Positions 1 to 23,800 are shown, counted from the first letter of the stretch. The stretch: 64,000 nt of DNA from Dendrobates tinctorius (GCF_039654945.1 NW_027361993.1:10416001-10480000), one strand, 5' to 3'. Program-made: numbers and translations. Notes: a model not told the origin generated them from the sequence alone.

Positions 1-986
1 TTGATATCAGGTGATTGCACCTTTTTTCTTTTCGAACCCACGTGAAAAAGCGCATGAAAAATGAACATAGTTCACAGCAATGTAAAAACAACATTGCTGT
101 GTACATGTTCCATTGTTTGATTATTCTTTTTGAACCCTGGAGTTGTTAAAAGAAGTAGCATGTACGCTCTCCTCTACTATAATAGAACATGCAGAGAAAA
201 GACCCTGGCTACGGAGTTGCCCCAAATGCCACTTTAGAAAAAAGACCTCTGGTGTTTTCCTGAAGCGGCTTTGTTTAGGAAAAATGTGCGCTTCTGCTGC
301 TTGAAAAAATAAATGTGTGCATATGAAGGTGCCATCCTTCATGGGATTTCAACCCAGGACCCCTGTGCTGTAAAGCAACACTGCTAACTGCTGCATGAAG
401 ACATTTCTGTTTTTTTTTTCAAATCATGGATCAAAATTACCCACAGTCTAGGGGTTTCTTAAAAATCACTGACAACGCTTGGTGACATCCATGTGCAATC
501 AATGTCTGCTTTTAACATTGCAATAAGTGGGATAACGTTTCAATGTATATATTTACTGCATATAAGAAACTCAAAGATGAAACATTGATGGTAAAAACTA
601 GCACTTACCAAAGACTGATAAAAATCAGATCCAAAACGCTGATGAAAATTGGGCCGTTTTTTTTCCTGTGTGAGAAAAATCAGTGATGTCTGAATAAGCC
701 TTTAAACCAATGCTTTGGTGCAGCTGTCTGACATCAGCTCAGAGACCATCATGTAACTGGGTGTGAAAGTGTGCCTGGCACAGGGTTATGAAAAGTATCA
801 TATACGTATGAGGTAAAAGGAAGTCTTTCTTGTAGTTGTCCTCTCCAGTCCTCACATTACTGCTATGGGAGGTAATAGTTCATTACCAGTGAGGCAATGT
901 TCCTCGAAGCCCCTTGGGTTGTAATGGAGCTTCAGTTCCTGATACATTGTAGGGATAGATACAGTAGAAGCCTTTGGACTTCCTCT

Positions 987-1205
987 TCTCCCAGGCGGTT
1001 GTGATATTTCACACATTTCTACCAGGCACACTTCCAGTCTCATAGACAAGTGCCCTCAATTAGGACTAATGTCCTCAGTTTTCAGAGCCAGGCTGTGATA
1101 TCAAGGAGCTAAGGTGTGAAAGTGTGTTGCTCCGAAGGGGTCCATTCACACTCCGCTCATCAAAGGATAAGGGAGTGAACTATCTAGATCTAAACTGGGA
1201 GAGGA
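987..1205. promoter_or_regulatory. Candidate enhancer, copy A (T-box-like + TCF/LEF motifs)
   Basis: AGGTGTGAAAGTGTG 1112-1126, TTCACAC, ATCAAAG 1159-1165; clearly homologous to 4076-4283. Confidence 0.5.
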
Positions 1206-1974
1206 CAAGTGCATAGGAATTCAAAGACTACAAGTGTGGTTATGTGCAACTGTACCGGGGCCATTTACTGCCTTGGTATTGGCATCCTGGCAGTGTGGTG
1301 GCCTCAGTCTACAACCTCAAGCAACCTTATCCCACATGATTGCCTCCAACTTCCAATGACAGACTGACCATGGACCATAGATAGATGGTGCAAGTCATGG
1401 GAATTCATACTGCTCATCTAAGACAATGATGGTCAACCTGTGCTCTCCAGACAGTTATGGCAAGGAATAAATAACGGCACTCCTGGTTGGTGCTCAAGTA
1501 GGGTCCAAAACCAATTAAGTTTATGAAAAAAATTGACACTAATGAATGTCATGTTTTTTCATATACTCCAGACAGTTATGGCATGTGGCAAGCATTGTAG
1601 TTTCCCAGCAGCTGAAGGGCCACAAGTTGGACACCACTGATGTGAAAGTGGCCATACACATTAGATAGTAGTTTGATTGTTCAACAAACAATCTTTTGGT
1701 AAATGACCATTAAGCCTCCCACAGATATTAGAATAATGTTGGATGAACCCGCCTATATTGTTGAATTCAGGCGACAGTCTAGTGTGTATAAGATCTGAAG
1801 GAGACAAGGATGCCCAATTTCAGACTGACAAACTTTTTGTTCTCACAGAGATAAGCTGCCACAAGACATGTCTGTCACCAACTCTCATAGGTAATAAAGG
1901 AATACTCTGCCGAACAAATGCTCCTGTGTATGAGAGACACGGCTGAGATGGCTGTCAGCTGAACCATGGTGGCC

Positions 1975-3010
1975 CGAAAAAAAAATGAAGAGGCCTCAAC
2001 TTCAAGTTTGCAAACAAGTATGAAAAGTGGACAATAGAAGATTGGAAACAGGTGATGTGGAGCGATGACATGAAAGTCAATAGACTAGGCTCTGATGGGT
2101 GCAAATGGGTCTGGAAGAAACAAGGGAAAAATGGATTGAGAAATTGAAGGAAATGTCAAATTAGGTGGAGGAAGCCTGATGATATGGGGTTGTTTCACAG
2201 CCAAAGGTATTGGATACTTGACCAGGATCAATGGTGGTCTCAGTGCTGAGCTATATGTGAGTATCCTACAAGATGAGTTACCCTATTTTACGGATTATAG
2301 GATGCACTTTTCTCCCAAAACTTGGGGGGGAAATGGAGGTGCATCTTATAATGCGTATATACCTTACCGGTATCGTTGCTGCAGGCTAGGATGAGGGGGT
2401 GTCCGACGGTGCTGCTGGGGTGTCCGGCGGTGCTGCTGGAGTCTTTGGTGCTGCGGGGGGGGGATCTGCTGACATTTTGTGAAAGTCCTGCGTCCCCGCA
2501 GCCCCCGTGGTTTCCTGTGCAGTGGACTTCAGGAAAATGGCTGCCGGGGGGCGGCGAATGCACAGTTGGAGATCTTGGCATCAAGATCTCGGGAGATGAG
2601 ATTTCAGCAGCACCGCCGAGCACCCCAGCACCACCGCCGGGCACCCCCGCAGCACCAGACCCCCACAGCACTGGACCCTTGCAGCGGCGCAATGCACATC
2701 GGAACACCCCCTCATCCCAGCCTGCGGCCTGCAGCATCACCCCACTCCTGCCTCCTCCAGCAGTGACCCTGGGACCCCGCTTCACAGCAGCCACCACCCC
2801 GGGTAAGCAATAAGACGCATGGATTATAAGAAGCACCACCATTTTATTAAAACAAATTTTTTTTCCCATTTTTCTCCTCAAAATTTGGGGTGCATCTTAG
2901 AACCCGGAGCGTTTTATAATCAGAAAAATACGGTACATTGTACACTCGAGTACTATGGATATGAAAATGACGACATAGTGTTCCAGCAGGACAACAAACC
3001 GAACCATACG
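1975..3010 (+). mobile_element. Tc1 transposase fragment split by a MITE
   Basis: Motifs WKQVMWSDD, MIWGCF and ILQDEL|HCTLEYY..IVFQQDN continue across the 2281-2933 insert. Confidence 0.8.
2281..2933. mobile_element. Non-autonomous Tc1/mariner-type element
   Basis: Ends CCCTATTTTACGGATTATA..TATAATCAGAAAAATACGG, TA on both sides, host frame interrupted. Confidence 0.75.
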
Positions 3011-3411
3011 TTAAAGATTTTATATGTTTTCCCCATATTTGCGTGGGTTTCCGACACATTCTCCGGTTTACTCCAGATGATGATGTCCGTAAAACACTAT
3101 GTAATATGATGGCACTGTATACATCACATAAGAAAGAGCTGGTGAGGAGCACAGAGTGTTTTATCTCTGCCCATAAAGAACATCTTACCACTGGAAGTGT
3201 TGGACTTAATTCAATGCTGCGTATACTGTGGTGGTGTTTAGTAGTGAATGCTGCATGCATGTACACACACTCTACAGAAATAATAAAGGGCCAGCGGACA
3301 GAAAGATGGGACCTATGGTCCACCAGGAATCTGCCCATTGGCCGGGCTTGACCAAATAATATTGAGGTCCATAAATAGCCCACAGATCAGAGGTTCCCCT
3401 CACTACCCTTA

Positions 3412-3849
3412 AGGCCCCGTCGCACAAAGCGAGATCGTTAGAGAGATCGCTAATGCGTCACGGATTTTGTGACGCAACAGCGGTCTCGCTACATGTGATA
3501 CATAGCGGCGACCGGCCCCCTCGCTGATCGTGCTCGAATGTCCTGGGCCATTTTTTCATCGTCGGCGTCCCGCTGGCCAGCATGCATCGCTGTGTTTGAC
3601 ACCGACGAGCGACCTCGTTGGCAACGCAGAACTCAGGGACGCAGGCTGGAATCGTTCAGAATAACTACTATGTGACAACACACCAGCGATCCCTAACAGG
3701 TCATATCATTGTCGGGATCGCTGTTGCGTCGTTAAAGAGATGTGCCTGTTTGACATCTTACTAGTGAGCATTTAGCAATACACCAGCGATCCCTACCGGG
3801 TTGTATTGTTGTCGGAATCGCTGGTGCGTCGCTATGTGAAACGGGACCC
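3412..3849. mobile_element. PIF/Harbinger-like MITE
   Basis: TTA-AGGCCCCGTCGCACA..TGTGAAACGGGACCC-TTA; AGCGATC-rich internal inverted repeats. Confidence 0.7.
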
Positions 3850-4075
3850 TTACTCTAGGGTTAGACGTTGATTTATGTTTCCAGGCATGTTTTTCCTGTT
3901 TGTCAAGACATATCAGTATGGAGAGTGAAAGTGTGCTCGGCACAAGCCTTTGAGAAGTGCCATACACATGCTAAAGGGAAACCTCCATTGTGGGTGTGAT
4001 GACACCCACATTACACAGACAACTACAGAAGGACAGTAAGATATACCTATACAATGGGAGTTCTGGTTTCCCTAC

Positions 4076-4283
4076 TCTCCCAGGCGGTTGTGATATCTCA
4101 CACCTGCTTGCCAGGCACACTTCCAGTCTCATGAACAAGTGCCTATAGAGTAATTAGGACTAATGTTCAAGCTGTGATCAAAAGGTACTAAAGTGTGAAA
4201 GTGTGCTGCTGTGATGGGGTCCATTCACACTCAGCTCATCAAAGGACTGGGGTGGCTAGCCACCCAAACCTAAACTGGAGAGC
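4076..4283. promoter_or_regulatory. Candidate enhancer, copy B
   Basis: TCTCACACCT, GTGTGAAAGTGTG 4193-4205, TTCACAC, ATCAAAG 4238-4244; motifs are retained while spacers diverge from copy A. Confidence 0.5.
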
Positions 4284-4637
4284 AAACTTGACACTTGCAA
4301 GTTCAATAACTAAATATCTGCAATGGGTGTTTGATCTATTGTTCATCTACTGTAAAACTTTACCTTGGTTATATAGAATTACCTTTTTATTCTCAAAAGT
4401 AAGACAGACTGATTGGCCCCCCTATTCATTGCTGTCTTTTACTATTTTATCAATAGCAGCGTATCATTAGATGATTCAATAAAAAGGGTTTTTTTTTTAC
4501 CCAAAGAACTAACAAGGCAATGTTCCAGTTTAGCCACTGAGCCATTTTCAAGATATTCATTAAATATATCTAATTTAATTTACTTCATATACACAGTACT
4601 ATTCAAAATGTTTAGGTAAGTGTAGAAAAATGACTAA

Positions 4638-5085
4638 AGGCCCGTCACACACAGCGATCTTGCCAGTGAGATCGCTGATTTTGTGACGCCACAGCGATCT
4701 CACCAGCGAAATCTCTGTGTGTGACATGGATCAGCAATCGGCCCCCCCCCGCCAGGTATCGCTGATCGTGTAGCATCGTCCTGGGCCATTTTTTGATCAT
4801 TGGTCTCCCGCTGGCCAGCGTGCATCGCTGCGTGTGGCAGCGAGAGACCAGCGATCAGCAACGCTGGACGCTGGTTTCCAATGTAAACAGCGGGTATCCA
4901 AGAGCCGTGTGGCTGTTAGATACCCGCTGTTTACATTGGAAAGCAGCTTGCTCGCTGGTCCTGATCACTAGAGGGGCTGTCTATGTGACAGCTCACCAGC
5001 GATCAGCCTAGCGATGTCCCAGCGATCCCATCCATGTCGGATCGTTGGTGGGATCGCTGGGACATCGTTATATGTAACTGGGCCT
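4638..5085. mobile_element. PIF/Harbinger-like MITE (same group)
   Basis: TAA-AGGCCCGTCACAC..GTAACTGGGCCT-TAA. Confidence 0.7.
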
Positions 5086-5089
5086 TAAG

Positions 5090-5765
5090 ACTGAAACACA
5101 GTCATTAACTGAAACAGAAACAGATGTGTATGAGGCTTTAAATTAGGTGAGGAACAGGAAAACTGCTATAAATGTGATGTAACCTATGTAATGGTTGTGG
5201 AAGACAGTTTCATGTCTCAGCTCATGCACCATAGAAAGACTGAGCACAACAACAAAACACAAAGTCATTATAGTGCATCAGCAAGGTATCTCCTGGGTAA
5301 ATATTTTAAATCAGACTGGGGTTTCAAGATGTGCTGTTCAAGCTCTCTTGAGCAAATGGGCAAAGTTGAGGACCTTAGATGCAGTGTTCGGCCAAGGAAA
5401 CTAACTTAGTGTAACAGATGAAAGACATGTCCTGCTTACATCCTTTCAAAATCAGAAGATGACCAGCAGTGGCATAAGCTCTGAACTGGCAATAACCAGT
5501 GGGACCCAGCTAAACTTCTCTACTGTTCAGAGAAGTTTGCCAAAAGTTGTTCTTCATGGATGAATTGCTGACAGAAAACAGTACCTTCCACATGGACACA
5601 AGGCCAAGCGACTCAAGTATAAGCAAAAACATAGGAACTGGAAGAAGAAAAATGGAAGAAGGTGTTCTGGTCTATGAGTCAAAATGTGAAATATTTGGCT
5701 GTAACAGAAGGCTGTTTATTCGCCAAAGGACTGGAGAGCGGTACAATAATGAATGTCTGCAGGAG
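5090..5765 (+). mobile_element. Decayed Tc1 fragment
   Basis: HTH-like QTGVSRCAVQALL and YESKCEIFG (DESKFEIFG-like); many frameshifts. Confidence 0.7.
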
Positions 5766-6119
5766 ATGTGTGGATCCATTGCTTTGGCCCTGTATGTTTG
5801 TTTTTTTTAACATACAGTACTTAAAAAAGGACAAAACACACAAGCCAGAAAGACTGTAGTACATAGGTGAATAAAGAAACACTTTTTTGACACTGAGCTT
5901 AGACGGGTAATATGAACACTATAACATAAAATACTTGTATTAATGATAAAATATTCACTCCTATCATTTTGCAATCATGTTGTAATCTGTGTCATTATTT
6001 TTAAATGCTTCCTAATGATTTTTCAAATAAATTAAATCTGAAAGATTCTCCGCGTGCTTCATTGTCGGTGCCTAGTGCAAAGCAGCAGATGCGCTAAAAC
6101 CTTTTTTTATGGTGTGTTC

Positions 6120-6373
6120 CTTTCCCACACTTTCATGTCTGTCTGCACAATACCCACTCCAGATGCTATCCTGCTCTATCACAGTTTACTGAGACACACG
6201 TCCATTGTCCCCGCAGCAGTGGGATTGGAGGGTGAGTGTGGGAACCTCTTGTAAGTCCGCTCTCCACACATCATTATGCAGGGAGAGGGGTATATAGAGG
6301 GGAGGCCGCTCACTAGTAGTCAGACAGCTCCTGCCCCACACAGCACAAGACTACAGACTGCCAGACCTGCACC
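6120..6373 (+). promoter_or_regulatory. Notch-responsive promoter of copy 1
   Basis: CSL/RBPJ sites TTTCCCACAC (6121) and GTGTGGGAA (6236-6244), inverted CCAAT (GATTGG), SOX-like CATTGT, TATATAG 6291-6297, N-boxes CACTAG 6311 and CACAAG 6344. Confidence 0.8.
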
Positions 6374-7344
6374 ATGGCCCCATGTAATATGAGGACCCCG
6401 GACCATCAGGCTGACAGCGGCCTCAGAAAGGTAAGAGCCCCCCGACTAGTGGCAGCGTCCCCCCCATATATCTACACGTAGAAACTTATAGGAACAGGAG
6501 TCGGATGTTTTCCAAGTTGTCATCCATAGACATGGCCACTGGCGCAGGGTAATAATGAGAGATTCTTCTTTTCTGCAGCTGAGGAAGCCGGTGATTGAGA
6601 AGTTGAGGAGAGATCGCATTAACAGCAGCATTGAGCAGCTCCGCGTCTTACTGGAGAAGGAGTTTCAGAGACATCAGCTCCCCTCCAAACCGGAGAAAGC
6701 CGATATCCTGGAGATGACGGTCACCTTCCTGCAGCGGCACATGGCGGAGAGAGGTAAGTGTCGTGTCCGCACTCCTCACACCCCTCACGTGTTTCTTAAT
6801 GGATGAGTGCTGTGTTTATTATATTGTTTCTTAAAGTAGGGTCATAAATCTGATTATTCTGATCTGACTTTGATGTCATCCGAGTGCGGTCCGATTTTTT
6901 CCACGGATACATAGACTTGCATTCCCAATTTTGTTCAGACACTCGGATCAAAATTGGACGTCTCCGATTTTTTTTCCTCTGTCATGTGAACAGCCCCATA
7001 GAATATCATAGGTATAAGTGCTATCCTTAAAAAACTCTGATAGCACTCGTGTGGGAAAATTGTGTGCATGACCCTTTATAGAGAGCAGAACAGCCGGTGA
7101 TGGACGCTGTCACTGATATGTTGTCTTTCCTGTTCTAGATGTCACAGCCTCCAGCCAGGCCCAGAGAGAAGGCTACTCCACCTGCGCCCAGGACGCCGTC
7201 ACCTTCTTACCAGTCCCGAATCAACAAGATGGCTCCTTCTGCAGTGGCTACCCTGTATCCTATGAGCTGTCTACCATGAAGACTTCTAAGAAAGCAAGTC
7301 CATTCACTGGGAACAAGAATAAATCTATGTGGAGACCCTGGTGA
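6374..7344 (+). CDS. hes5: HES5-like bHLH-Orange-WRPW repressor, copy 1 (145 aa, divergent C-terminus)
   Basis: Exons 6374-6430, 6579-6753, 7139-7344 with GT..AG introns. Spliced protein: MAPCNMRTPDHQADSGLRK|LRKPVIEKLRRDRINSSIEQLRVLLEKEF..KPEKADILEMTVTFL..|DVTASSQAQREGYSTCAQDAVTFLPVPNQQ..KSMWRPW*. RKPVxEKxRRDRINSSIEQL is the HES5-type basic/helix 1. Paralog number cannot be assigned. Confidence 0.93.
6839..7074. mobile_element. Old MITE-like insertion in intron 2 of copy 1
   Basis: Ends GGGTCAT..ATGACCC with internal TCCGATTTTTT inverted repeats; absent from copies 3 and 4. Confidence 0.55.
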
Positions 7345-8991
7345 ATAATGACCAAGGCATTGACCATATCATGGACTGGTCTAAGATGGTCACTTTATGC
7401 CATTATGGTCTATTTGACCCCGGACGATCCTTAGTACATGGACATTTGTGCAGTGATGATGATAATGACGATGAGACGTCCACTCTGCTAGTTAAGGGGT
7501 GACCTAAAGAAGCCAAGCCTTTCTTATAGAAAGTCCTGTTTTTCCTTCTCTTAGGGAAGTTATATTGAAGTTCCTACATCGGGGACAAAATGTTAACTGA
7601 TTATGAGTTGTGTCATTTTTATGTATTTTCACATATGCCTATTTCTGTGGAGCCACATAGTGCGCTCCTCCTATCAATGAAAAGTCCTGCCGTATTTTGT
7701 ACTCAGGCCATGATGCACCCACGACGAGGGTTAGGACCTGATGGACTCTAATAATATGTTCCTTCTCTTCTGTGAAGATGCTATTTAGGGTTAACACTGA
7801 TAATGTGCATTCCTTAGGTAGACCAATGTCTTGGTCTGTAGCAGTTTGGGGGGTTATTGAGTTGGAAAAAGTTTTTTTATGGTTTGTTAAAAAACTTCTG
7901 TAATTTCTGTGAAATGTATTCATTCACATGCCGAATCAATGTCATTCAATAAGTATGAGATGTCGCATTGTGTTACATGCAGATGTTTGGATTTATTACA
8001 TCGCTGTCAGTACCCAATAAAATAAATTATTATTATTACAGAAATGTTTTCATCAATAAATTAATATAAATAAATAAGAAATGCAGAAGTGTTAAAGTAG
8101 TTGTTCAGGATTAGAAAAATAAAATATGTTCTCTTCTTTCTAAAAACAGCCCCATATCTGTCTGCAGATTTTATGTGACATTGCAGCTCATCCCTACTCA
8201 CTTCAATGGTGCTGAGATGCAATACCACACACGGCCTGTAGATAGGTGGGGCACTTTTTTTGGAAGAAAGCAGTCATGTTTTAATTCTTGGCAAAACCTT
8301 AAAACAATACAGTGTAGTAAGTAAAACAACACATTTCATTCTGCTAAAGGGGTTAGTTATTGGTGGTCAGTCCTTAGTCGGTGCTGTGGCCCCAAGACTT
8401 ACCTGGTCAGTGGGGGTGCCAGGACTCAGACCCCCTATAGATGAAATCATCTGACGTAAGGATAGGCCATCAATATTACAATCCTGGTAATAAATGACAT
8501 TATAGCAACTGTTATGACACTTTACTCTACAAGGCCAATAGTTATGGGTGCCAAATCTGTGGCAATATCTGCCTTTCAGGAGCTAGGGATAGCTGGGTGA
8601 CATAGCTAGGGTTTTGGTTCGGGGGGGCGAAACTTCTGAGTGGGCCGCTAACCAGACAACCTCAGCAGATGACCGCGCTGTTGCCAAAAATAATCTATAT
8701 ATAAAAAGACCAGTATTGACATTACCGCCATATGGTCAGTGGTAAATAATACCAGTCCTACAAAACGTATGGTAGATTACAGCAGAGTTACAGATAATGA
8801 CTTACCGCTGACGTTCTTTCTGATGGAATCGTTCACTTTTCCAGTCTTTCCCATCTGGCCCAGACCGACATGACGACTCCTCCAGCCAGGACTCGGCTAC
8901 AGAGAATACAACAAAGACACGTTTCACTTCTCATATTTTCAGCACTGTCACCAATTGGACTATTCTCAACCTGCACAAACTGCTCATCCTG

Positions 8992-9356
8992 CTAATACCC
9001 CAATACTGAGCGGCTGCTGCCGTATGTGTCCCTATTACTGCACCTGATACCCCAATACTGAGCCGCTGCTGCTGTATGTGTCCCTATTACTGCACCTGAT
9101 ACCCCAATACTGAGCGGCTGCTGCTGTATGTGTCCCTATTACTGCACCTGATACCCCAATACTGAGCCGCTGCTGCTGTATGTGTCCCTATTACTGCACC
9201 TGATACCCCAATACTGAGCCGCTGCTGCTGTATGTGTCCCTATTACTTAACCTGATACCCCAATGCTGAGCCGCTGTTGCCATATGTGCCCTATTACTGC
9301 ACCTGATACTCCAATACTGAGTCGCTGCTGCCGTGTGTGTCCCTATTACTGCACCT
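8992..9356. repeat. 52-bp minisatellite (~7 units)
   Basis: Unit CTGATACCCCAATACTGAGCCGCTGCTGCTGTATGTGTCCCTATTACTGCAC. Confidence 0.9.
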
Positions 9357-9404
9357 AATGTGTGGTTCTGTGTGACCTCTAAATTCTAAAGCAACTCTAT
9401 AGAA

Positions 9405-9872
9405 CAGTGGTCCCCAACCTTTCTGACCTTGAGAGCCACATTCAGCTTAGAGAAAGGGTCACGAGCCACATCGATCTCCCACCCCCTTCAAAGTAGTGTC
9501 AACCAAAGCCACCATTACAGGTATAATGATAACCAAAGGTTTTCCACAGAAATCCCCCCAAAGCAGTACACTGAAATCCAGGGGTTCCTACAATACCTCC
9601 ATTCAGTATTCTCCCATCAAGGACTCCCAACACACTGTCACATCCAGCTTCAGGCACCTGCTCCGACAGCTAGTATCATCCTCCAGCGTACCATACCTAA
9701 AACATCTTTAAACCCCTAAGACCAGTGTATGTGCATCCAGATCTGCTATTCTGTTCAGGGCTACTCACAAAATTCACCATTTTGAGATGTGCTCTTCATA
9801 CGTGTTTGCTAAACCTGGAGATAACGCACCAAGCTGGCAGACAGCTGCGAGTCACAATTCATGGGACCCCTG
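9405..9872. mobile_element. hAT-like non-autonomous element
   Basis: CAGTGGTCCCCAA..TGGGACCCCTG ends; imperfect 8-bp flanks ending in TAGAA. Confidence 0.55.
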
Positions 9873-10004
9873 CGCTAGAATATAGTAATGTCGGGTGCAA
9901 GTGCCCTAGAAAACAGGGCCCACATTTTGTCCCCTAGAATGTAATATTGTCCTGTGTGTGCCCCTTTGACGGTCACAGTAATCTGAGTTCCCCTATAACA
10001 ATAA

Positions 10005-10399
10005 AGGTACTGTCACACTAAGCGATATCGCTAGCAATATCACTATAACTTGTGACGTTATAGCGATATTGCTAGCGATATCGCTATGTCTGATACTTAC
10101 CTCCGATCGCTCCCCCGCTGGTTATCGCTGATCGCGCGAGAACGTTCAGGACTGTTTCTCGTCGTCAGCTTCCTGCTGGGCTTCCTGCTGTGACGACGAG
10201 CGACGCGTGGAGCCGGGCGGGAGGACGCAGGATCGCCTGGTGTGACAGGTAAGTAGCGACCCCAGTCCCCAGCGATGTCGCTGGTGAGATCTGCCTGTGT
10301 GGCAACTCATTAGCGACCACATAGCGATGTACTAGCGATCCTGACCGCGTCATATCGCTGGTCGGGATCGCTGGTGCATCGCTAAGTGTGACAGTACCT
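10005..10399. mobile_element. PIF/Harbinger-like MITE
   Basis: TAA-AGGTACTGTCACACT..AGTGTGACAGTACCT-TAA. Confidence 0.8.
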
Positions 10400-10619
10400 T
10401 AAGTGCCCACTTTACATAACAATGTCCCGAATCTCCCCCTGTACAGCTCCACTTTACACAGTATGATGCCCCCTCACTGTATATATACTGACCCCTTAAT
10501 ATCCCCAAACTATTTAATGGCGCCAACACTGTATGATGGCCTCGTCACTATAATCCCCACACTGTATGATGGCCCCCTAGATAGCATCCATATCATAATA
10601 CACCAGATAGTCCTCATTA

Positions 10620-11072
10620 TAGTATAATGCACTCCCCACAGGCAGCCTATTATAATGCACCCCCTATAGGCAGCCTCTATATTGTAGTAAACTCTCATAG
10701 GCAGATTCTGTATTATAATGCACCCCCATAGGCAGAGTCTATAGTATAATGTACTCCCCATAGGCAGTCTCTATATTGTAATGCACCCCCATAGGCAGAG
10801 TCTTTAGTATAATGCACTCCCCATAGGCAGCCTCTATATTATCATGCACCCCCATAAGCAGCCTCTGTATTATAATGTACCCCCATAGGCAGCCTTTGTA
10901 TTATAATGCACCCCCATAGGCAGCCTCTATATTATAATGCACTGCCATAGGCAGCCTTTGTATTATAATGCACCCACATAGGCAGCCTCTATATTATAAT
11001 GCACTGCCATAGGCAGCCTTTGTATTATAATGCACCCACATAGGCAGCCTTTGTATTATAATGCACCCCCAT
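10620..11072. repeat. ~30-bp minisatellite
   Basis: Repeated TATTATAATGCACCCCCATAGGCAGCCTC. Confidence 0.85.
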
Positions 11073-11529
11073 TACAAAAATAATAAATCCAGTACTCACC
11101 TCTCTTTCTCCTGTTTCCTGCGCTGCTTACTGCTCCCGCTCATCTCCTGACAGCGGGCTCCGGGGAGTGACGTCAGCGCGACCGCTGTCAGACGCTGAGA
11201 GGGGGATGATGGGAGAAGGAGCGCTCGCTCCCTCTCTCATCACTGCAGTCAGGTGTATCAGCTGGATGCTGATATAGCTGACCCTGCGATGATGGGTGGG
11301 GGGCCCACTGCTGGCATCGGGCCCCCCCCGCCTGCTCAGGGCCCCATAGCGGTAGTGCAGGGAAATCGAGTCTCCCTGCTCTGTTGCCAAATGTAACTGC
11401 ATTGGCGCTCTGCGCACGCCGATACAGTTACAGTATAGTAGCTCCGGATGGGCCCCTTCAGAGCACAACCATCTAACGGCAATTCTTTCAGCGTTTCTGC
11501 AACATTTTTCACAAACTCAATTGAATGGG

Positions 11530-11815
11530 AAAAATACACATGCAAAAATGTGTAAAAAACAAGCAAAAATGCGTAAAAAACACAAGCAAAGCCGCATAAA
11601 AACAAGCAAAAAACGCATCAAAAAAACGAGCAAAAATGCGTAAAAAATACAAGCAGAGACGCATCAAAAACACAAGCAAAAAACGCGTATAAAACACAAG
11701 CAAAAAACGCGTAAAAAAACAAGCAAAAACACATAAAAAATACAAGCAAAAAACATGTAAGAAACACAAGCAAATTTCGTAAAAGACTCAAGTAAAAATG
11801 CGTAAAAACATGCAT
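11530..11815. repeat. A-rich low-complexity tandem repeat
   Basis: AAAAACAAGC/AAAAACGCGT units. Confidence 0.8.
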
Positions 11816-12777
11816 ATTTTACGCAGCATCTTTCCTGCCAAAACTGAAAAATCTTCTACAAATACCATGTGCACATACTGTAAGGGTCACAATGCGACCC
11901 CATTCATCTATGTTACGCGACCTGTGTCGCTGCCAAAATCGGCATCTAGCCCGATCCTTAACTAGCCAATCTTATTGGGGGGAGGCCATGGCCTGACAGA
12001 CATTACATCTCTACAGAGTATATGGCATAACCATCCTAATTTTTGTTCCCACTTTAACATACACCCTATTGGATAAATATTACAATAATGATTAGTTCAG
12101 ACACCAAGCGGTGATACCAGATAAGTTATATTTTTATAATGAACGCTCATCTGTGATTGCTGTGACAAAGACTTTTGGAGAGTTCTCATAAATCTGCAAC
12201 ATTACTCGTTGTGTAGTCCAGAGGATGTGCGCAACTATACTGGGTGCATCGGTTGCAGTTGCTCCCCCCAAGCCCTTTAGCTTAGGGGGCAAAAAGAAGT
12301 ACAATACTAAATAACAGATTTATTTGGGGTGAGAGATCAGTTCTGCATTTTTTTTTTTTCATAGATTCCTAGTTTGTCAGCACAGAGGCCATGAAGCCCA
12401 CATGTCACATCTTCACCTCCTGAAGACATAAGAAAACATAATTCCTGACTTTGATGGGTGAAGGTGGAGGACACACTTTCACACCTCGGTGCTAGCAGGA
12501 TTCTCAATCTCATCTGTGTTCTGGGGATTGTTGGCAGCTTTGCTTTGTGGGAAGAGACCCCCGGTACAGATAGAGGTATGGTAGGGGTCTGCCATGTGTG
12601 CAGGATTACCATACTCACAGTGCCGACCCATGTAGTTTTTAGAGAAAAAAAGTGAAACACTTATTACTTTCATTTCTAGTAGCAGGTCATGCTGGGAGTT
12701 GTAGTATTCTATGTATAGAATAATATTGTCATTTTTAATAGTAAGTCAATATTGAGAACTGTAGTATTCTATGCATA

Positions 12778-14342
12778 CAGTCATGGCCAAAAGTTTTGAG
12801 AATGACACAAATATTATATTTTCACATGATCTGCTGGCCTCTGGTTTTTATGTGTGTTTGTCAGATGTTTTTATCACATACAGAAATATAATTGCAATCA
12901 TATTATGAGTAACAAAAGGTTATATTGACAGTTAGAATGAGTTAATGCAGAAAGTCAATATTTGCAGTGTTGACCCTTCTTCTTCAGGACCTCAGCAATT
13001 CTCCCTGGCATGCTCTCAATCAACTTCTGGATCAAATCCTGACTGATAGCAGTCCATTCTTGCAAAATCAATGCTTTTATTTTGTCTGAATTTGAAGGTT
13101 TTTGTTTGTCCACCCGTCTCTTGATGATTGACCACAAGTTCTCAATGGGATTAAGATCTGGGGAGTTTCCAGGCCATGGTCCCAAAATCTCTATGTTTTG
13201 TTACCTGAGCCATTTAGTTATCACCTTTGCTTTATGGCAAGGTGCTCCATCATGTTGAAAAAGGCATTGTTGATTGCCAAACTGCTCTTGGATGGTTGGG
13301 AGAAGTTGCTCTTGGAGGACATTCTGGTACCATTCTTTATTCATGGCTGTGTTTTTAGGCAAGACTGAGAGAGAGCCCATTCCCTTGGCTGAGAAGCAAC
13401 CTCACACATGAATGGTTTCAGGATGCTTGACAGTTGGCATGAGACAAGACTGGTGGTAGCGCTCACCTGGTCTTCTCCGAATAAGCCGTTTTCCAGATGT
13501 CCCAAACAATCGAAAAGGGGATTCATCAGAGAAAATGACTTTACCCCAGTCCTCAGCAGTCCACTCCCTGTACCTCTTGCAGAATATCAGTCTGTCCATG
13601 ATGTTTTTCCTGGAGAGAAGTGGCTTCTTTGCTGCCCTCCTTGAGACCAGGCCTTGCTTCAAGAGTCTCCGCCTCACAGTGTGTGCAGATGCACTCATAC
13701 CTGCCTGCTGCCATTCCTGAGCAAGCTCTGCACTGCTGGTGGCTGATCCCGCAGCTGAAACACTTTTAAGAGACGGTCCTGGCGCTTGCTGGTCTTTTTG
13801 GGCGCCCTGGAGCCTTTTTGGCAACAAGGGAACCTCTCTCCTTGAAGTTCTTGATGATGCGATAGATTGTTGACTGAGGTGCAATCTTTCTAGCTGCGAT
13901 ACTCTTCCCTGTTAGGCCATTTTTGTGCAGTGCAATGATGACTGCACGTGTTTCTTTAGAGATAACCATGGTTAACAGACGAGAAACAATGATGCCAAGC
14001 ACCAGCCTCCTTTTAAAGTGTCCAGTGGTGTCATTCTTACTTAATCATGACAGATTGATCTCCAGCCCTGTCCTCATCAACACCCACACCTGTGCTAATG
14101 GAGCAATCACTGAAACGATGTTAGCTGGTCCTTTTAAGGCAGGGCTGCAATGATGTTGAAATGTGTTTTGGGGGATAAAGTTCATTTTCTAGGCAAATAT
14201 TGACTTTGCAAGTAATTGCTGTTAAGCTGATCACTCTTTATAACATTCTGGAGTATATGCAAATTGCCATTAGAAAAAATGAAGCAGTAGACTTTGTAAA
14301 AATTAATATTTGTGTCATTCTCAAAACTTTTGGCCATGACTG
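12778..14342 (-). mobile_element. Full-length Tc1 element with disrupted transposase
   Basis: TIR CAGTCATGGCCAAAAGTTTTGAGAATGACACAAATATTA at both ends, TA target duplication; ORF pieces with VIFSDES and [15 protein letters not shown] in different frames. Confidence 0.95.
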
Positions 14343-14520
14343 TAGTGCATAATAGAATTATGTAATAGTTGTGTCCAGTGATCAGGCCATGATGGGAGTT
14401 GTACTATGGTATTATTAAGTAACTGAGTTAACGTTGGGGGTTGCAGTGCTCTCTATATAGTGTATAACAGGGTTGTAAAAAAGATATGTTGGGGGTTGTA
14501 GTATATTAGAGTAATATCTA

Positions 14521-15213
14521 CAATAGCATGTAAAAGTTTGGTCAAAATTAACTGTTATTACGAACAGTTAAGCAAGTTGAAGATGAAATGATCTCTAAAA
14601 GGCCTAAAGTTAAATATGACACATTTCCTTTGTGTTTTAGGCAAAAAATATATATGCATATTTTCATCTTTAACATTTTAAAAATTATAAGAAGGAAAAA
14701 TTTGAACACCCTTGTGAGCTCAGATAACTTTGACCAAGGTTTCAGACCTTATTTAGCCTGTTAGGGTTATGGCTTTTTCACTATCATTGTTAGAAAAGGC
14801 CAGCTGATGTAAATTTCCCAGATTTATGAAAAATCAGCCTCCTCTAATCTTGTTCTTGAAAACTGCAGCCATGGGTTCTTCTAAGCAGCTGCCTAGCACT
14901 CTGAAAATGAAAATGGTGGAGGCCCACAAACCAGGAGAAGGCTATAAGAAGATAGCAAAGTGTATTCAAGTTGCTCTTTCCTCAGTTTGAAATGTAATTA
15001 AGAAATGTCAGTTAACAGGAACAGTGGAGGTCAAGATAAGGTCTGGAAGACCAAGCAAAATTTCAGTGAGAGCTGCTTGTAAGATTGCTAGAGAAGAACC
15101 CCTGCTTGACTGCAAAAGACCTTCAGAAAGATTTAGCAGACTTTGGAGTTGTGCCTCATTGTTCTACTGTTCAGAGACACCTGCACAAGTATGGCCTTCA
15201 TGGAAGAGTCATC
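14521..15213 (+). mobile_element. 5' fragment of a Tc1 element
   Basis: MGSSKQL..GEGYKKIAK and RSGRPSKIS motifs; truncated. Confidence 0.75.
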
Positions 15214-16646
15214 CTAAATACACATCAAAATCCACAATAGACCTCAAAAGGCGCAAAGTTATGTATTACTCTATGTGTAGAGTAATATATAACTGCATTA
15301 TGACCGTGTACAGCTTAATAGAATAGACTGATATAAGGATCCTACCCAGTGGTAAGGTCATATGACGAGCTAAGTCTAATGTCCTTTTAAGTTACCGTAG
15401 ACCTGGTCAGCAGAGTATTAAATCCCATTCACATGCAGCAGATGTCAGGCAAAACATTCAATTCAAGCAAAGATCATCTTCCAAGTCAGACCTGTTCCCA
15501 CAGTTATCTTCCTGCTGCTTCATGAATCCCTCTATTATATTACCGCCCCAGATGTTAGTGTTGTGTCCTCCACGGTTAAATGTGACACACTCCTATTGTC
15601 TGTGCCCTCTATCTAATGCCTGCTGTGTGTGGGAAAGCCTGGACTGCAGGGGGAGGGTGGCGTCTGCCTATCTTCACACTTACTACTGCCTGGGGACAGG
15701 CACTGCAGAGTATGTCATGTATCGATTACTATGTTATATACACTTAATTAATAAATACATTTGTAACAAATAGAAACATTTAATTTCTGCATATATATGA
15801 AAATAAGACTGGGCTAGGGAGCAATGGAGGCATTGTATACTCCACCTAGGCAGGCATGTCTACTCACCCAGTTTTCCATGGAGCCACCCATGTTGCTCAC
15901 AACCAGGGTTACGTTGGAGACATCCATAAAAATTGTATACTTTTTTCCACTGTCCGTTAGAAAGTCTGTACATTTTTTGTAATGATCATTTTACAGTTCA
16001 GTGACTGCGTCTTACAGGTTTAGATCAGTTTTTAAATCTGTAAACATTTATTTCCTATCATTTTTATGTTTCATTATGGCTTTCCAATATATCAGTATAA
16101 AATGTTGTCTGTGATTTTCAGATGAATAGTTCAGAAAAAAGTAAAAACCAAGATGGTAAAGTCCCGGAACATCAGGGTGCAATCGCTATTGTGGCAAAAA
16201 AGATTCGGAGAACGCTGAGAACCTCATCCCTGATGCCTCTTCTGATTACTAGGCTCAGTGCTGTGTCATACACTGACGACCTACGTGGCCAATGGTCCAG
16301 GGTCCTGCAAGTGGCGATGTATGGGGATATCTAGACTAATAGCTTTAGGGCAAGTAAGTGGTCAACTGAACTGCAAATATCCAAATCTCTCCACTCTTAA
16401 GGATAAACGTGAAGGACATTGTCTGTGGCACGTCGTGGCAATTTTTTTTTACAGCTATGCTTTAGGGCTTTTCACTCATCTGTGCAATTCAGTCCAATGT
16501 CAGATCGCAAAACTCCTGACCCGAGAAATATATGAAGCTATATCATGCTCGGGTCGGGTGTCGCGGCCAGTCTGTGCATTGCTATCCAAAATCGGACTGA
16601 ATTGCACGAACGTATGAAATAGCCGTAATCTTGCCTAGTCCCTTAT

Positions 16647-17375
16647 CAGTGGCGGATTATAATGAGGTCAATTTGGGCAGTTGCCCCGGGCCCAGTGGGG
16701 TTAAGGGGCCCACAGCCCAGGCCAGTAAATTGCCCCATTATAATCCGCCACCGCGCAGGGCCGGATTAAAGGCAGGGCAGGCGGGGCTTCAGCCCCGGGG
16801 CCCCCACCACAAGAGCTTCTAAGGGGGCCCCCACCACATTCCTGCTGGCTGCTGCAATGGCACTCCATCTTCTCCCCACCTAAAAGTGAGTGACCGTGGG
16901 GGCGGCATTATGTGCTCTGCTACCAGCAGCATCTACAAGCTCACAGGAGGTAAGGTGTCAGGGCCCCCGATCATGTGACCCCTGTCTCCTCCCCTCCTGT
17001 GACCTCATCACAGGTCCTGTGCGCACAGCACAGAGCACTGAGAGCAGCCATGTATGTGGAGTGCGGCTCTGCGGGTGGAGGTCGGTTCTGGAGGCTCCAT
17101 TATTCTCTATGTAGAGTGTGGCTCTGCGGGTGGAGGTCGGTGCTGGAGGCCCCATTATTCTCTATGTGGAGTGCGGCTCTGCAGGTGGAGGTCGGTGCTG
17201 GAGGCTCCATTATTCTCTATGTGGAGTGCGGCTCTGCGGGTGGAGGTCGGTGCTGGAGGCTCCATTATTCTCTATGTAGAGTGTGGCTCTACGATTCGTG
17301 ACCCCCGTCACGTGACGAGGGGGGCCCACAGAGTCTGAACTGCCCCGGGCCCTGGCTACCCTTAATCCACCCCTG
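16647..17375. mobile_element. hAT-like non-autonomous element carrying a 55-bp tandem repeat
   Basis: 8-bp duplication TCCCTTAT on both sides; ends CAGTGGCGGATTA/TAATCCACCCCTG; internal repeat ~17050-17290. Confidence 0.85.
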
Positions 17376-19244
17376 TCCCTTATATACTATCCTAAAAATA
17401 TAGTGCCCCTAATGAAGCCTCTTAATACTCCCACACAGTTAAATGAACCCTTCATGGCCTTCACAAAGTATGATGCCCCAAAGATACCCCCCACACACAT
17501 TCATTTCCCCCATATTGCCAATCGTACACATAGAATAATGAACCCCCAGTGCCTCCCACAAACAATATGGTGCCTGCCCTTCCCTATTCCCACAAAGAAG
17601 CCATCCACAAAGTATGATGCACCCTCAGTCCTCCTCTACACACAGTCTGATGCCCTCAGTATCCCCACCAGAGTATGATTGCCCCACATCCCCAACTATA
17701 CATATAATATAATTCCCCACAATGCCCCATTCCCACCAGTATGGTACCCCTCCATTCCTCTCTGTACTGTACCTGTTCCCAGCGCAGCAGGCACGATGTA
17801 GCGGCATTATTGTACCTCCTGACCTCCTGTGCTGCGCCTCAGATGGCACAAGTGAATGGTGGCACATGGAGCAGTTGGCTCCCGGCTCCACCACTATGTT
17901 AAGCTGCAAATGCATCCCAAAGACTCAGACAGCATGACATGCCACTTACCTCCTGGGACAATGGGACATACAGGATGACCATACGGCCATCCTTCCATAT
18001 TGGACATTCATGGCATATCCACAAGATATGCCATAACTGGCTGATAGATGCAGGTCCCAGAAGAGCCGTGACCTGCATATACTATATCTCTAAAAATGTC
18101 CCAAGGCTGCCATGAACAGAGAGGTGGCAGACAGTACATGAGCGTCTATTACTACCGGCATGAGATGGGGCACTGTTCTTGAAATGGGTGGCGGTCCCTC
18201 AGGTGTTTCCCACATCCATTAGACCTTATAGTATATCCTGGGAATATTATCCCACTTCTATCCCCTATTGAAATTATATAGGGAAGACAGAGAAGATAGT
18301 TATCTATTGGACACTGATCTTTTCTGTGGGACCAGTCATTGTCTAGAAGCTCAGATTCTCCAACCTAACCAGTCTGAGAGCTAATGGTTTTGTCTCCTTC
18401 CTTTGATATGGAGGTGACATTTGCCACATAGCCTGCTTGGGATAATAGACACACACTTTCACAAGGTGGTGATGCTGGCCTGGTATTGTCAGGACTCCTA
18501 ATAGCACGTCATAAAAGACAGTTTCACAGATACTGGGAACAGATAGATCACAGTCAGGGCGAAAAGGCTGAAAGGAATCCTGTACTTCAGAAGGAGCTAA
18601 GGTGTTTCTTAATGTGATATCAGATCAGATTTTTGTTTCCTGGTAGGAGAAGTTGGGAATAATCTCGCTGTCAACATAGACATCATGATGTCAAGATTGT
18701 TGGGATCCATGTAATGTCTACAGAAGGGTATAATTGGTTCTGATTGTTTTCCCAGCTTTTTGTTAGCAGCACTCTTCATAAATGAGCGTTATTATCAGAA
18801 TCACTGTTTTTACTAGCAGGATGGATTAAATATACAGGATTGCGAAAAATTATGTTTCCCACCACTTCAGTACGTGACATCAGTCGAACATCCATAAATT
18901 GTGATCTGTATTCAGATATTTTGAAAATAGTGAGATATTTGACCATATAGTATATTACAGAGTTGCAGAACATTATATAATGAAAACAATAAAGGGGTTG
19001 TCCATTCTTTTTCTTTAGGAGCGCACCGCCACTTTGCATCCAAGCTTCCTGCTTGCAGGGTGCAGTGCTCTCCCGAACACCAGTTTGGACCTGTGACTTT
19101 GTCATGCCAGTGCACTTTCCCATCTTGGGGTAACTTTGCCTCTGCAGCATTGGAGGAGCACAGGGACAATGAAGTTGGCCAGATTCAGAGTTGCAGGAGA
19201 CTACAAGCATGGCCTCCTTTGCCTAGAAAACTAGCCATCTATAA

Positions 19245-19626
19245 AGGCCCCGTTACATTTAGCAATGCACCAGCGATCGTGACCACGATATGACCTGGTC
19301 AGGATCGCTGATGAATTGCTAAATGGTCGCTAGTGAGCTGCCAAACAGGCAGATCTCACTAGCGACGCAGCAGCCGTCGGCGGTTGCGCTTACCTTTCAG
19401 ATACGGCGAGGGTGATCGTCTTCCGCCTGCGTCCATGGCTCGCTCGTCGGCGTCAGCAGGAAGCCGACGAAGAGAAATGGACCAGGCCGATCTTGCGCGA
19501 TCAGCGATAGCCAGCTGGGGAGCCGGTCGGAGGTAAGTATCACATGTAGCGATATCGCTAGTGATATCGCTGCTGCGTCACAAAATCGGTGACGCTTTAG
19601 CGATATCGCTATGTGTAAAGGGCCCT
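19245..19626. mobile_element. PIF/Harbinger-like MITE
   Basis: TAA-AGGCCCCGTTACA..TGTAAAGGGCCCT-TAA. Confidence 0.7.
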
Positions 19627-20603: not shown

Positions 20604-20741
20604 GCAATGTGTGTGATTGGATGCAGAGTGTGAGAACCGTGCACAGGACCCTGCTCCACACATCATTTTGCTGAAGGATTGCCCCATATAAAAACCAAAC
20701 CAGCCACTGTCATCTGTTCCCAAACTGACGGCCATGTAAGT
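20604..20741 (+). promoter_or_regulatory. Orphan hes5-type promoter with a very short putative first exon
   Basis: GATTGG, GTGTGAGAA (20628-20636), TCCACACATCATT (20655), TATAAAA (20687) in the same order and spacing as the hes5 promoters; then GCCAT|GTAAGT. Confidence 0.6.
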
Positions 20742-20811: not shown

Positions 20812-23800
20812 TTAATTAAGACTTCAGTCTGCATTGTGATTCCTATAAGTGTGTGCTAGAAGTGTGAAGATTAATTTAAGAATTAAAACCAGAATTGAAC
20901 CAGAAGGGAACTGAAGGTAACTGTACACAGTCACTGTAAACAATGTTTCTGTTTGTTTTCACCCCTATAATCCTTCACTTTCTGCTAATTCCCCTAATCC
21001 CTACTCCTAGTAAGGAACTGTTCATCTCTTCTTCAATCCTCCCCATCCACCTCACCTCCACCTCAAAACTGTTCCTTACCATACAGTCTCCAAACACAGA
21101 CAGCCCCCTCATTCCCTCTCCTGCTCCCACCTGCTAACACTTTCTCTGCTCCTTCTCACTGCTGGTGATATCTCCCCAAATCATGGTCCTCCTCACCACA
21201 TTCCCACAGTCATTTCTACCTCCCATCCACGCTCTATCACAACCTTCCGTAACCTCTCCAACCTTATACCCATTCACCCGGCCCCCGCTTCCCCAGTCCC
21301 ACTAACAGGAGCTCTGTGGAACGCTCGCTCTGTTTGCAACAAGCTTTCCTACATCCATGATCTTTTTGTTACTACCAAACTTTCCTTCCTCGCCATCAAC
21401 GAAACCTGGCTCACCCCTTCTGACACAGCCTCTCCTGCTGCACTTTCATATGGTGGCTTCCACCTTTCTCACACCCCCCGCCCCAGCAGCAAACATGGCG
21501 GAGGAGTTGGTTTTCTCCTTTCAGATACCTGCTCCTTCACCCCAATCTCACTGCCACCCTCTGTTACCCTCCCTTCCTTTGAGGTGCACTCTGTGCGCAT
21601 CTACTCCCCCTCCCACCTCCAACTGGCTGTCATCTACCGCCCCCCAGGGCCAGCCACCACCTTCTTTGACCACTTCACCACCTGGCTACTTCATTTCCTT
21701 TCCGCGGACATCCCTACTATCATCATGGGCGACTTCAACATCCCCATTGACACTTCCCTCTCAGCTGCCACTAAACTCCTATCTCTCACTTCCTCCTTCG
21801 GCCTCACTCAATGGTCTTCTACAGCCACCCACAAAGATGGCCACACACTGGACCTCATCTTCACCCAACTCTGCTCCCTATCTAACCTCTCTAACTCACC
21901 TCTTCCTCTCTCTGACCACAACCTTCTCACATTCTCTTCCCTCTTCACTCCATGTCTACAATCCCCACCCCACAAACTTTCACACCCTTGCAGAAATCTT
22001 AAACACCTTGACCAACACTCGTTCTCTGAATCCCTTCTCCCTCTCACAGATATAAGTTCCTTACACAATGCGGATGACGCTGCCGCTCTATATAACACCA
22101 CAATAGCTGTAGCTTTGGAATCCGCTGCCCCACTTACACATACCAAAGCTCACAAAATCAACAGACAGCCCTGGCACACCAGCCTGACCAAAGTGCTGAG
22201 GCGAGCTTCCAGGGCTGCTGAGCGCAGATGGAAAAGATCCCACTCCAACGAGCACTTCATCGCATTCAAACAGTCCCTCACTACTTTCAAGACCACACTC
22301 GCCACAGCTAAACAAACCTACTTCTCATCTCTCATATCCTCCCTGTCTCACAACCCTAAACAGTTATTCAACACCTTCAATTCTCTCCTCCACCCCCCAG
22401 CACCTCCTCCCTCCCCACTCATCTCAGCTGAAGACTTTGCCTCATTTTTCAAGCAGAAGATTGATAACATCAGAGAAAGTTTTGGTCAACAACCCCCAGA
22501 ACCCTTCCTCCCGACTTCCCAGCCCTCCACCTTCAAAACCAACTTCTCCACCATTACAGAAGATCGACTCTCCACTCTACTCTCAAGATCACATGTCACC
22601 ACCTGTGCACTCGACCCGATCCCATCCCACTTCATACCAAACCTCACCACAGTCTTCATCCCAACCCTAACCCATCTCTTCAACCTATCACTAACAACTG
22701 GTGTTTTCCCCTCAAGCTTTAAACATGCCTCCATCACACCTATCCTCAAAAAGCCCTCTCTTGACCCATCCTCTGTATCTAGCTATCGCCCTATATCACT
22801 TCTCCCCTACGCCTCCAAGCTACTGGAACAACACGTCTACCTTGAACTGTCCTCCCATCTCTCTTCTTGCTCCCTCTTCGACCGCTTACAATCTGGCTTC
22901 CGGTCACAACACTCCACTGAAACTGCCCTTACTAAGGTCACCAATGACCTCTTAACCGCCAAGAGCAAGCGACACTACTCTGTCCTCCTCCTCCTGGACC
23001 TGTCGGCTGCCTTTGACACAGTGGACCATTCCCTATTATTACAGACCCTCTCATCCCTCGGCATCACAGACTTGGCCCTATCCTGGATCTCATCATACCT
23101 AACAGACCGGACATTCAGCGTCTCCCACTCACACACCACCTCCTCACCTCGCCCCCTATCTGTCGGAGTCCCACAAGGTTCAGTCCTTGGGCCCCTGCTG
23201 TTCTCTATTTACACCTTTGGCCTGGGACAGCTCATAGAATCTCATGGCTTTCAGTATCATCTCTACGCTGATGACACACAGATCTACATCTCTGGACCAG
23301 ATATCACCTCCCTACTAACCAGAATCCCTCAATGTCTGTCCACTATTTCATCCTTCTTCTCCGCTAGATTTCTGAAACTCAACATGGACAAAACAGAATT
23401 CATCATCTTTCCCCCATCTCACGTGACCCCCCCTACGAACCTATCAATTACAGTAAATGACTGCCCACTCTCCCCAGTCCCACAAGCTCGCTGCCTCGGA
23501 GTAATCCTTGACGCTAATCTCTCCTTCAAACCACATATCCAAGCCCTTTCCACTTCCTGCCGACTTCAACTCAAAAATATTTCACGAATCCGTTCATTCC
23601 TCACCCAAGAATCTGCAAAAACCCTAGTCCATGCCCTCATCATCTCTTGCCTTGACTACTGCAACCTCCTGCTCTGTGGCCTCCCCTCAAACACTGTCGC
23701 ACCCCTCCAATCTATTCTAAACTCTGCTGCCCGACTAATCCACCTGTCCCCCCCGCTATTCCCCAGCTTCTCCCCTCTGTCAATCCCTTCACTTGCTCCC

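Follow-up and report, generated by a model that had tools for sequence, protein, structure and literature searches.

In zebrafish, the divergent hairy/E(spl) pair her1-her7 shares intergenic control DNA that depends on T-box and Su(H) input in the presomitic mesoderm. These two genes belong to another hes subfamily than frog hes5.8 and hes5.9. In the mouse, a cluster of T-box half-sites (AGGTGTGA, AGGTGTTG) stands together with TCF/LEF sites within Dll1's 'msd' enhancer, and also in the Mesp2 promoter/enhancer; msd serves a Notch-pathway gene in the presomitic mesoderm, and both kinds of site are required there, according to PMC7473639, which cites Hofmann 2004 and White & Chapman 2005. TBX1 binds tandem T-site repeats of the form AGGTGTGAAGGTGTGA, among them some whose downstream site is degenerate, and Brachyury, TBX15 and Eomes bind direct T-site repeats (PMC4010391). 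Here we describe a 13-mer, GTGTGAAAGTGTG, which recurs next to TCF/LEF cores around a hes5-type gene in 64,000 nucleotides of the poison frog Dendrobates tinctorius (GCF_039654945.1 NW_027361993.1:10416001-10480000; this whole stretch is called the window). Unlike msd, the arrangement consists of a tandemly triplicated unit and two outliers beside hes5-type genes, in which the T-box site is part of a longer, invariant 13-mer, and it has no sequence homology to msd. The hes5.8-hes5.9 intergenic region of Xenopus tropicalis, on the other hand, is orthologous DNA, with the same units in the same order and orientation to hes5.8, and with exact 13-mers.

An earlier note on this DNA had placed the word, or a one-mismatch variant of it, at six positions, four of them with a TCF/LEF site close by, and had read these as T-box/Wnt shadow enhancers distributed around the hes5 cluster. 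All six positions did hold the word with at most one mismatch, and the TCF words were found where they had been placed (ATCAAAG at 1159 and 4238, CTTTGAT at 12449 and 18401), in the same orientation relative to the 13-mer. When up to one mismatch was allowed, our count gave seven matches in the window, a large excess over the 0.07 expected from dinucleotide shuffles. Four were exact, at 761 (+), 1114 (+), 4193 (+) and 12472 (-), and three had one mismatch, at 3923 (+), 18452 (-) and 21973 (-). Counted alike over the whole window, 24 among 58,002 distinct 13-mers recurred at seven or more separate loci, and all of these apart from GTGTGAAAGTGTG and its shifted versions were microsatellite, poly-A or hes5 gene-copy words. 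The match at 21973 has no TCF site beside it and lies within the open reading frame (ORF) of a long interspersed nuclear element (LINE), and it is probably a chance match outside the system. ATCAAAG occurs eight times on both strands of the 64 kb, and half of these occurrences (1159, 4238, 12449, 18401) sit 16-44 nt downstream of a 13-mer on the same strand; that at least three of five independent loci have an equally oriented ATCAAAG so shortly downstream of the 13-mer has a probability of about 5e-7. The TCF/LEF core near the word was present in two paralogous units, A and B, and in two single elements at 12.4 and 18.4 kb (Table 1), and its spacing in X. tropicalis was 34-39 nt. We found no discussion of the 13-mer in the searchable literature.

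The plus-strand units A and B each carry two copies of the word (type 1 and type 2), a central block GCACACTTCCAG and a TCF/LEF core. The six instances are real, but 761/3923 and 1114/4193 are paralogous pairs within one duplicated unit, and the independent events in the window are the type-1 site of the unit, its type-2 site, 12472 and 18452. Since four of the six instances stem from one ancient tandem duplication, the recurring grammar that had been proposed is largely a matter of common descent. Units A and B are 79% identical over their best-conserved 180 bp (987-1167 vs 4076-4246), and the DNA that separates them is filled with Tc1-like insertions and insertions resembling miniature inverted-repeat transposable elements (MITEs). 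Self-comparison of the 64-kb window detected no further copies of the unit, and Rfam detected no RNA families at positions 1-21000.

Such a pattern could also be functionless, produced by pieces of a dispersed repeat or by a GT-rich word that is in excess by chance: the single duplication behind four instances, the extra match inside a LINE and the wealth of transposons in the window all agree with this. In order to judge the repeat status of the units, we used contigs from public runs placed on 600-6599 at a likeness of at least 80%, which show which sequences exist and are not a measured copy number. Units A and B each had exactly one contig per run, with a summed depth equal to the depth of that contig (6-9); the summed depth of the flanking Tc1/MITE stretches was 1e3-1e5. 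A single contig per run was also found on A and B in three other organisms; over the units, the divergence of these contigs from the window was about 3-12%. Together with syntenic orthologues in the same order in four species, the presence of exact words in neobatrachians as well as in the pipid X. tropicalis, the lack of other copies in the 64 kb and the improbability of the TCF pairing, these results make the repeat or chance explanation scarcely credible. Units A and B are single-copy and not a dispersed repeat.

To follow the units across frogs, we aligned eight of them from four species over 481 positions. Invariant columns numbered 86, and 44 of these 86 fell in four blocks spanning 47 positions, namely the two 13-mers, GCACACTTCCAG and CATCAAAGG, the last of which holds the TCF/LEF core. 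Phyllobates terribilis is collinear with window positions 35-14502 and has units A and B plus a third unit, C, upstream of A. In Eleutherodactylus coqui, units B', A' and a partial C' lie ~5.6-8.6 kb upstream of a hes5.9-type gene; all five words occur there, four of them exactly and that of C' in a one-mismatch form, CTCATCAAAGGA is found in the two full units, and unit A is 75% identical to its E. coqui counterpart across 484 nt (BLAST). The indels pair A with A' and B with B', and therefore the duplication is older than the species split. In X. tropicalis, three tandem units were detected between the divergent hes5.9 and hes5.8 genes (nhmmer E ~1e-14 to 1e-15), at L008 13.5-16.7 kb. This corresponds to ~99.5480-99.5512 Mb of CM004449.2 and to ~986,000-989,100 of scaffold_73 in JGI4.1, where positions equal the L006 coordinate + 983,498. 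The array holds six exact 13-mers, and every unit has ATCAAAG 34 nt past its second word. The orientation of this array relative to hes5.8 matches that of the window, and of the GGTGTGA cores in the 10 kb that precede X. tropicalis hes5.9, five in number, each one falls within a unit. Alignment of orthologous frog loci thus identified the elements as conserved non-coding DNA and not as repeats or chance matches, with the motif pair as the most conserved part of each, in line with the earlier note. What was observed directly is the anatomy of the sequence, its single-copy status and synteny, and the way in which invariant positions concentrate on the words. The elements, which have changed very little since the lineages of poison frogs and Xenopus separated, are very probably functional cis-regulatory elements of some kind, and the multiplicity of these putative enhancers arose by tandem duplication and was retained in distant frog lineages.

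Two further elements with the same word-TCF pair lie downstream of the first hes5-type gene of the window, an orthologue of hes5.8. The element at 12.4 kb has orthologues in Phyllobates (L004 15110-15538, 86%) and in Anomaloglossus (L003 20605-20841, 81.5%). In Anomaloglossus the intergenic DNA around it no longer aligns, and the word, CATCAAAG and a 37-nt block have remained invariant. Profile searches gave a marginal likeness of this element to the type-2 half of the units (E 0.01-0.1). For an X. tropicalis candidate (L008 21412, GTGTGAGAGTGTG), orthology to this element was not demonstrable (z about 3). The element at 18.4 kb has its counterpart in X. tropicalis at L008 22997-23060 (BLAST E 3.5e-5; z = 15.6 for the local alignment vs shuffles), a site ~4.4 kb downstream of hes5.8 and at ~99.5421 Mb of CM004449.2, with an exact 13-mer at 23049 on the matching minus strand and with ATATCAAAG kept. 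As had been noticed before, the 12.4- and 18.4-kb elements show no likeness beyond the motif pair when the window is compared with itself.

Between them, a third conserved element at 15.6 kb holds a consensus CSL site and is 82% identical to X. tropicalis L008 22240-22294; it is collinear with the 18.4-kb element in both species and is probably a distal Notch-response element. GTGTGAA could be a low-affinity CSL/RBPJ site, as the earlier note had also considered, in which case the elements would be distal Notch-response elements of these Notch-target genes. One of the two CSL sites in the HES1 paired site is indeed TTTCACACG (= CGTGTGAAA) (PMC5410256), an inverted TTCACAC follows the type-2 word in neobatrachian units, and hes5.9 responds to the Notch intracellular domain (NICD) and to DAPT. 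A paired CSL site (SPS), however, is defined as two YGTGRGAA head-to-head, ~16 nt apart (PMC5410256); here the prevailing form of the word is GGTGTGAA, the inverted TTCACAC is 24 nt away, and this inverted partner is absent in X. tropicalis. In addition, most copies have a G in front of GTGTGAA, a place at which CSL favours C or T, and there is a T at position 5. The genuine CSL sites of this locus have the consensus TGTGGGAA, and they are found at the hes5 promoters and in the 15.6-kb element. We therefore regard a CSL identity of the word as very improbable.

The word is more likely a T-box site. In most copies the sequence is (A/G)GGTGTGAAAGTGTG(C/T), which begins with the T-box half-site AGGTGTGAAA as its first ten bases. 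The rest of the word repeats AAGTGTG(C/T) at an 8-bp period, and this gives a 14/16 match to the tandem T-site AGGTGTGAAGGTGTGA. The type-2 sites, which read AGGTGTGAAAGTGTGC, resemble the TBX1-type repeat in this head-to-tail order and period (PMC4010391), and differ from it at two positions of the second half-site. Each unit has two 13-mers containing (A/G)GGTGTGAAA and TCACAC(C) in its centre, and thereby a cluster of T-box half-sites matching AGGTGTGA. The GGTGA/GTGTGA half-site that the earlier note had seen between word and TCF site is present as claimed in the window and is retained among neobatrachians (as TTCACAC), but it is not kept in Xenopus.

Published work on X. tropicalis hes5.9, formerly LOC733709 (PMC7699193), bears on this reading. 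According to PMC3791401, LOC733709 depends on Xbra/Xbra3, and a cycloheximide induction test showed it to be activated directly by Xbra and VegT; in presomitic mesoderm and tailbud it is expressed in the manner of esr5, it is proposed as a segmentation component, and the region between LOC733709 and LOC100495414, which from its position is presumably hes5.8, illustrates Xbra binding that overlaps T-box motif matches. According to Huang et al., the gastrula expresses hes5.9 throughout its mesoderm, with the exception of the dorsal midline; later the gene is active in paraxial mesoderm, in the tailbud and in neural tissue, including neural plate and brain, and it depends on both FGF and Notch. 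The -2.2 kb primers of Gentsch et al. (PMC3791401) map to L006 7781-7881 as predicted, so that the coordinates agree. The surrounding DNA of X. tropicalis (L006 7560-7880, about -2.2 kb) was seen to place the amplicon next to two ATCAAAG, three consensus CSL sites and one T-box match. This region looks like a separate compound element, and its poison-frog counterpart would fall to the left of the window.

From these data we infer the binding proteins and the enhancer activity in the poison frog, and propose the following mechanism. The core is a tandem array C-A-B of ~0.5-1.2 kb units between the divergent hes5.9 and hes5.8 orthologues, with A and B alone inside the window. Each unit contains two invariant GTGTGAAAGTGTG, one GCACACTTCCAG and one TCF/LEF site 32-34 nt past the second word, and the single elements at 12.4 and 18.4 kb, downstream of hes5.8, contain the same word-TCF pair. 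T-box factors of the nascent and paraxial mesoderm (Tbxt/Xbra, VegT, Tbx6) would bind the word, read as a half-site AGGTGTGA followed by a degenerate second half-site AAGTGTGC at an 8-bp period, and TCF/beta-catenin would bind the adjacent ATCAAAG. Beyond the Notch input that the promoters receive, these factors would jointly drive hes5.9 and hes5.8 in the mesoderm of the marginal zone, in presomitic mesoderm and in the tailbud. We consider it rather probable that the 13-mers mark in this way an ancient anuran cis-regulatory set in the hes5.3-type cluster, acting as T-box plus TCF enhancers of mesoderm and tailbud. The enhancer reading of the earlier note thus keeps its conserved motif pair (a perfect half-site AGGTGTGAAA and ATCAAAG) and gains from the T-box-dependent hes5.9 that the region flanks, and it loses the middle half-site and most of the recurrence. 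More tentatively, the 13-mer might be a dedicated composite site (a T-box tandem dimer, or T-box plus partner) in an anuran-wide triplicated array that co-regulates hes5.8 and hes5.9 as a segmentation-clock/tailbud unit comparable to zebrafish her1/her7, the outliers at 12.4 and 18.4 kb being ancient dispersed copies that serve as distributed enhancers; this extended version we regard as doubtful.

Several observations weigh against T-box plus TCF enhancers of such age and reach. Neither the 13-mer nor paired TCF sites were found near hes5 copies 2-4 (40-63 kb), hence the arrangement is not cluster-wide; enhancers serving the divergent hes5.8/hes5.9 pair are likely, whereas the whole cluster, which the earlier note had in mind, is not supported. 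No units were detected up to 10 kb away from the hes5.9 orthologues in Bufo bufo (L005) and Anomaloglossus (L007), and the locus of Ascaphus (L009) had no 13-mer and showed a weak match to the central block only (E 7e-7), with TCF sites near. The missing units in these three frogs could be explained by large intergenic distances. The 12.4-kb element was not detected in the searched loci of X. tropicalis and E. coqui, and dendrobatoids are the only frogs in which it was seen. As far as the available portion of PMC3791401 goes, the sole amplicon for chromatin immunoprecipitation with quantitative PCR lies at -2.2 kb of hes5.9, as compared with -4.4 to -7.5 kb for the units, no published Xbra peak is placed on the units themselves, and the repeated unit, the 13-mer, its TCF pairing and their conservation are not described. 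Finally, the base before GTGTGA is not always G (unit B type-1 reads GAGTGAAAGTGTG), and the centre of conservation is TGAAAGTGTG and not the T-box core GGTGTGA, a pattern that might indicate a different factor. Separately, in Ascaphus truei two mutually inverted stretches upstream of the hes5.9-like gene (L009 7760-7900 and 8580-8700) hold TCF words in pairs, words resembling TTCACAC, and TGAGAAAGTGTGTC; these stretches may correspond to the units in strongly diverged form.

The displaced centre of conservation leads to another explanation, namely that this is conserved regulatory DNA whose word is read by a different protein, such as a zinc-finger repressor of the PRDM1/Blimp-1 type or an ETS- or IRF-like factor, within a different programme, for example neural-plate-border or primary-neurogenesis control, or for repression. 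The PRDM1/Blimp-1 consensus is AGTGAAAGTG. Most copies of the word match this core at 9/10 positions and unit B type-1 at 10/10, so that this site keeps AGTGAAAGTG and breaks the T-box core; all 13 nt are invariant, centred on GTGAAAGTG. The reverse complement of the central block, CTGGAAGTGTGC, contains GGAAGT and resembles an ETS core, and the second half of the word recurs in it; expression of hes5.9 in neural plate and brain would suit such a programme. Yet most sites read GGTGTGAAA, a full T-box half-site. Besides, the dependence of hes5.9 on T-box factors is experimental (PMC3791401), and the constant partner of the word is a TCF site, like that of known T-box/Wnt enhancers (PMC7473639). 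We hold a different binding protein to be unlikely on balance, and T-box plus TCF enhancers remain the explanation we prefer.

Table 1. Features of the window, with their orthologous positions where found; invariance is given as columns of the alignment of 8 units from 4 species.
Feature	Position	Strand	Remarks
Unit A	704..1278	+	nhmmer with unit profile E 1e-149; ~575 bp; holds 761 and 1114
Unit A orthologues			Phyllobates L004 2505-3181; E. coqui L002 3084-3616, minus strand
Unit A type-1 13-mer	761..773	+	GTGTGAAAGTGTG then CCTGGCAC; first invariant block, 12/13
Unit A central block GCACACTTCCAG	1026..1037	+	invariant 11/12
Unit A type-2 13-mer	1114..1126	+	with AAG in front reads AAGGTGTGAAAG, perfect T-box half-site AGGTGTGAAA; second 13-mer block, invariant 13/13
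Unit A TCF/LEF core ATCAAAG	1159..1165	+	32 nt past the 13-mer; block CATCAAAGG invariant 8/9
Unit B, paralogue of A	3881..4357	+	nhmmer E 4e-142; indels common to E. coqui B' and Phyllobates B
Unit B orthologues			Phyllobates L004 5465-5911; E. coqui L002 1363-1881, minus strand
Unit B type-1 13-mer	3923..3935	+	GAGTGAAAGTGTG; identical variant in Phyllobates B
Unit B central block GCACACTTCCAG	4115..4126	+	invariant block
Unit B type-2 13-mer	4193..4205	+	exact
Unit B TCF/LEF core ATCAAAG	4238..4244	+	
hes5 gene 1, hes5.8 orthologue, likely target	6375..7343	+	exons 6375-6431, 6579-6753, 7139-7343
12.4-kb conserved element	12300..12640	-	~330 bp; 13-mer 12472-12484, CATCAAAG 12449-12456, 37-nt invariant block 12403-12439
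CSL-bearing conserved element (15.6 kb)	15583..15638	+	consensus CSL GTGTGGGAAAG at 15627-15637
18.4-kb conserved element	18394..18464	-	13-mer (TTGTGAAAGTGTG) 18452-18464; TATCAAAGG 18400-18408
Probable chance 13-mer match	21973..21985	-	one mismatch; inside ORF 21584-23881, LINE reverse transcriptase with YADD motif

Four hes5-type genes lie in the window, all on the plus strand, with bHLH exons at ~6579, 40083, 46586 and 62879. The spliced model of gene 1 is identical over 145 residues to 'HES-5-like isoform X2 [Dendrobates tinctorius]' (P0006). Its orthologues have 145-147 aa in Ranitomeya and Phyllobates, where they are near-identical, 143 aa in Anomaloglossus and 145 aa in Leptodactylus, and it shares 51% identity with the 145-aa X. 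tropicalis protein P0102, whose gene stands to the units in an equivalent position and orientation and which, by length and position, is taken as hes5.8. With such orthologues, the tail of gene 1 is an ancient feature and did not arise by a recent accident. Over the promoter and first two exons, copies 1, 3 and 4 (6193-6798 vs 46224-46829 and 62517-63122) are 99% identical and their flanks are unalignable. Because of this pattern, the three copies appear to have undergone gene conversion confined to promoter and coding sequence. In E. coqui, the tandem hes5 array at locus L001 had no 13-mer; it does contain hes5-type promoter copies with no called gene (6604-6723, 13273-13369), which recur regularly in a ~7-kb tandem unit, and therefore the 'orphan' hes5 promoters of the window (20604-20741) are not peculiar to it.

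The mobile DNA of the window was also surveyed. A Tc1/mariner element at 12776-14344, with 47-nt terminal inverted repeats (96% complementary) and fragments of a transposase ORF, is absent at the orthologous site of Phyllobates and is therefore younger than the split from that lineage. A GCGATCGC-rich MITE-like family is represented at 3420-3852, 4640-5090, 10000-10400 and 19240-19630. In public contigs its summed depth was 1e4-1e5 in D. tinctorius and one other organism and far lower in two others, and the copy at 3420-3852 is missing in one relative. At 29950-29985, a palindromic T-box-like pair (TTTCACACCT ... AGGTGTGAAA) sits in a hairpin-forming repeat with GCGG-rich arms, and it looks like a repeat and not a conserved element.

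In summary, our results map a candidate T-box/Wnt input to the frog hes5 genes to five short elements, with four invariant blocks in each unit. They turn a broad Xenopus ChIP observation into mutational predictions at the level of single bases, for the 13-mer, for its two halves and for ATCAAAG. The duplication history of the units, in turn, bears on the expansion of the hes5 cluster in frogs and on the tie of Notch targets to the formation of mesoderm and tail.

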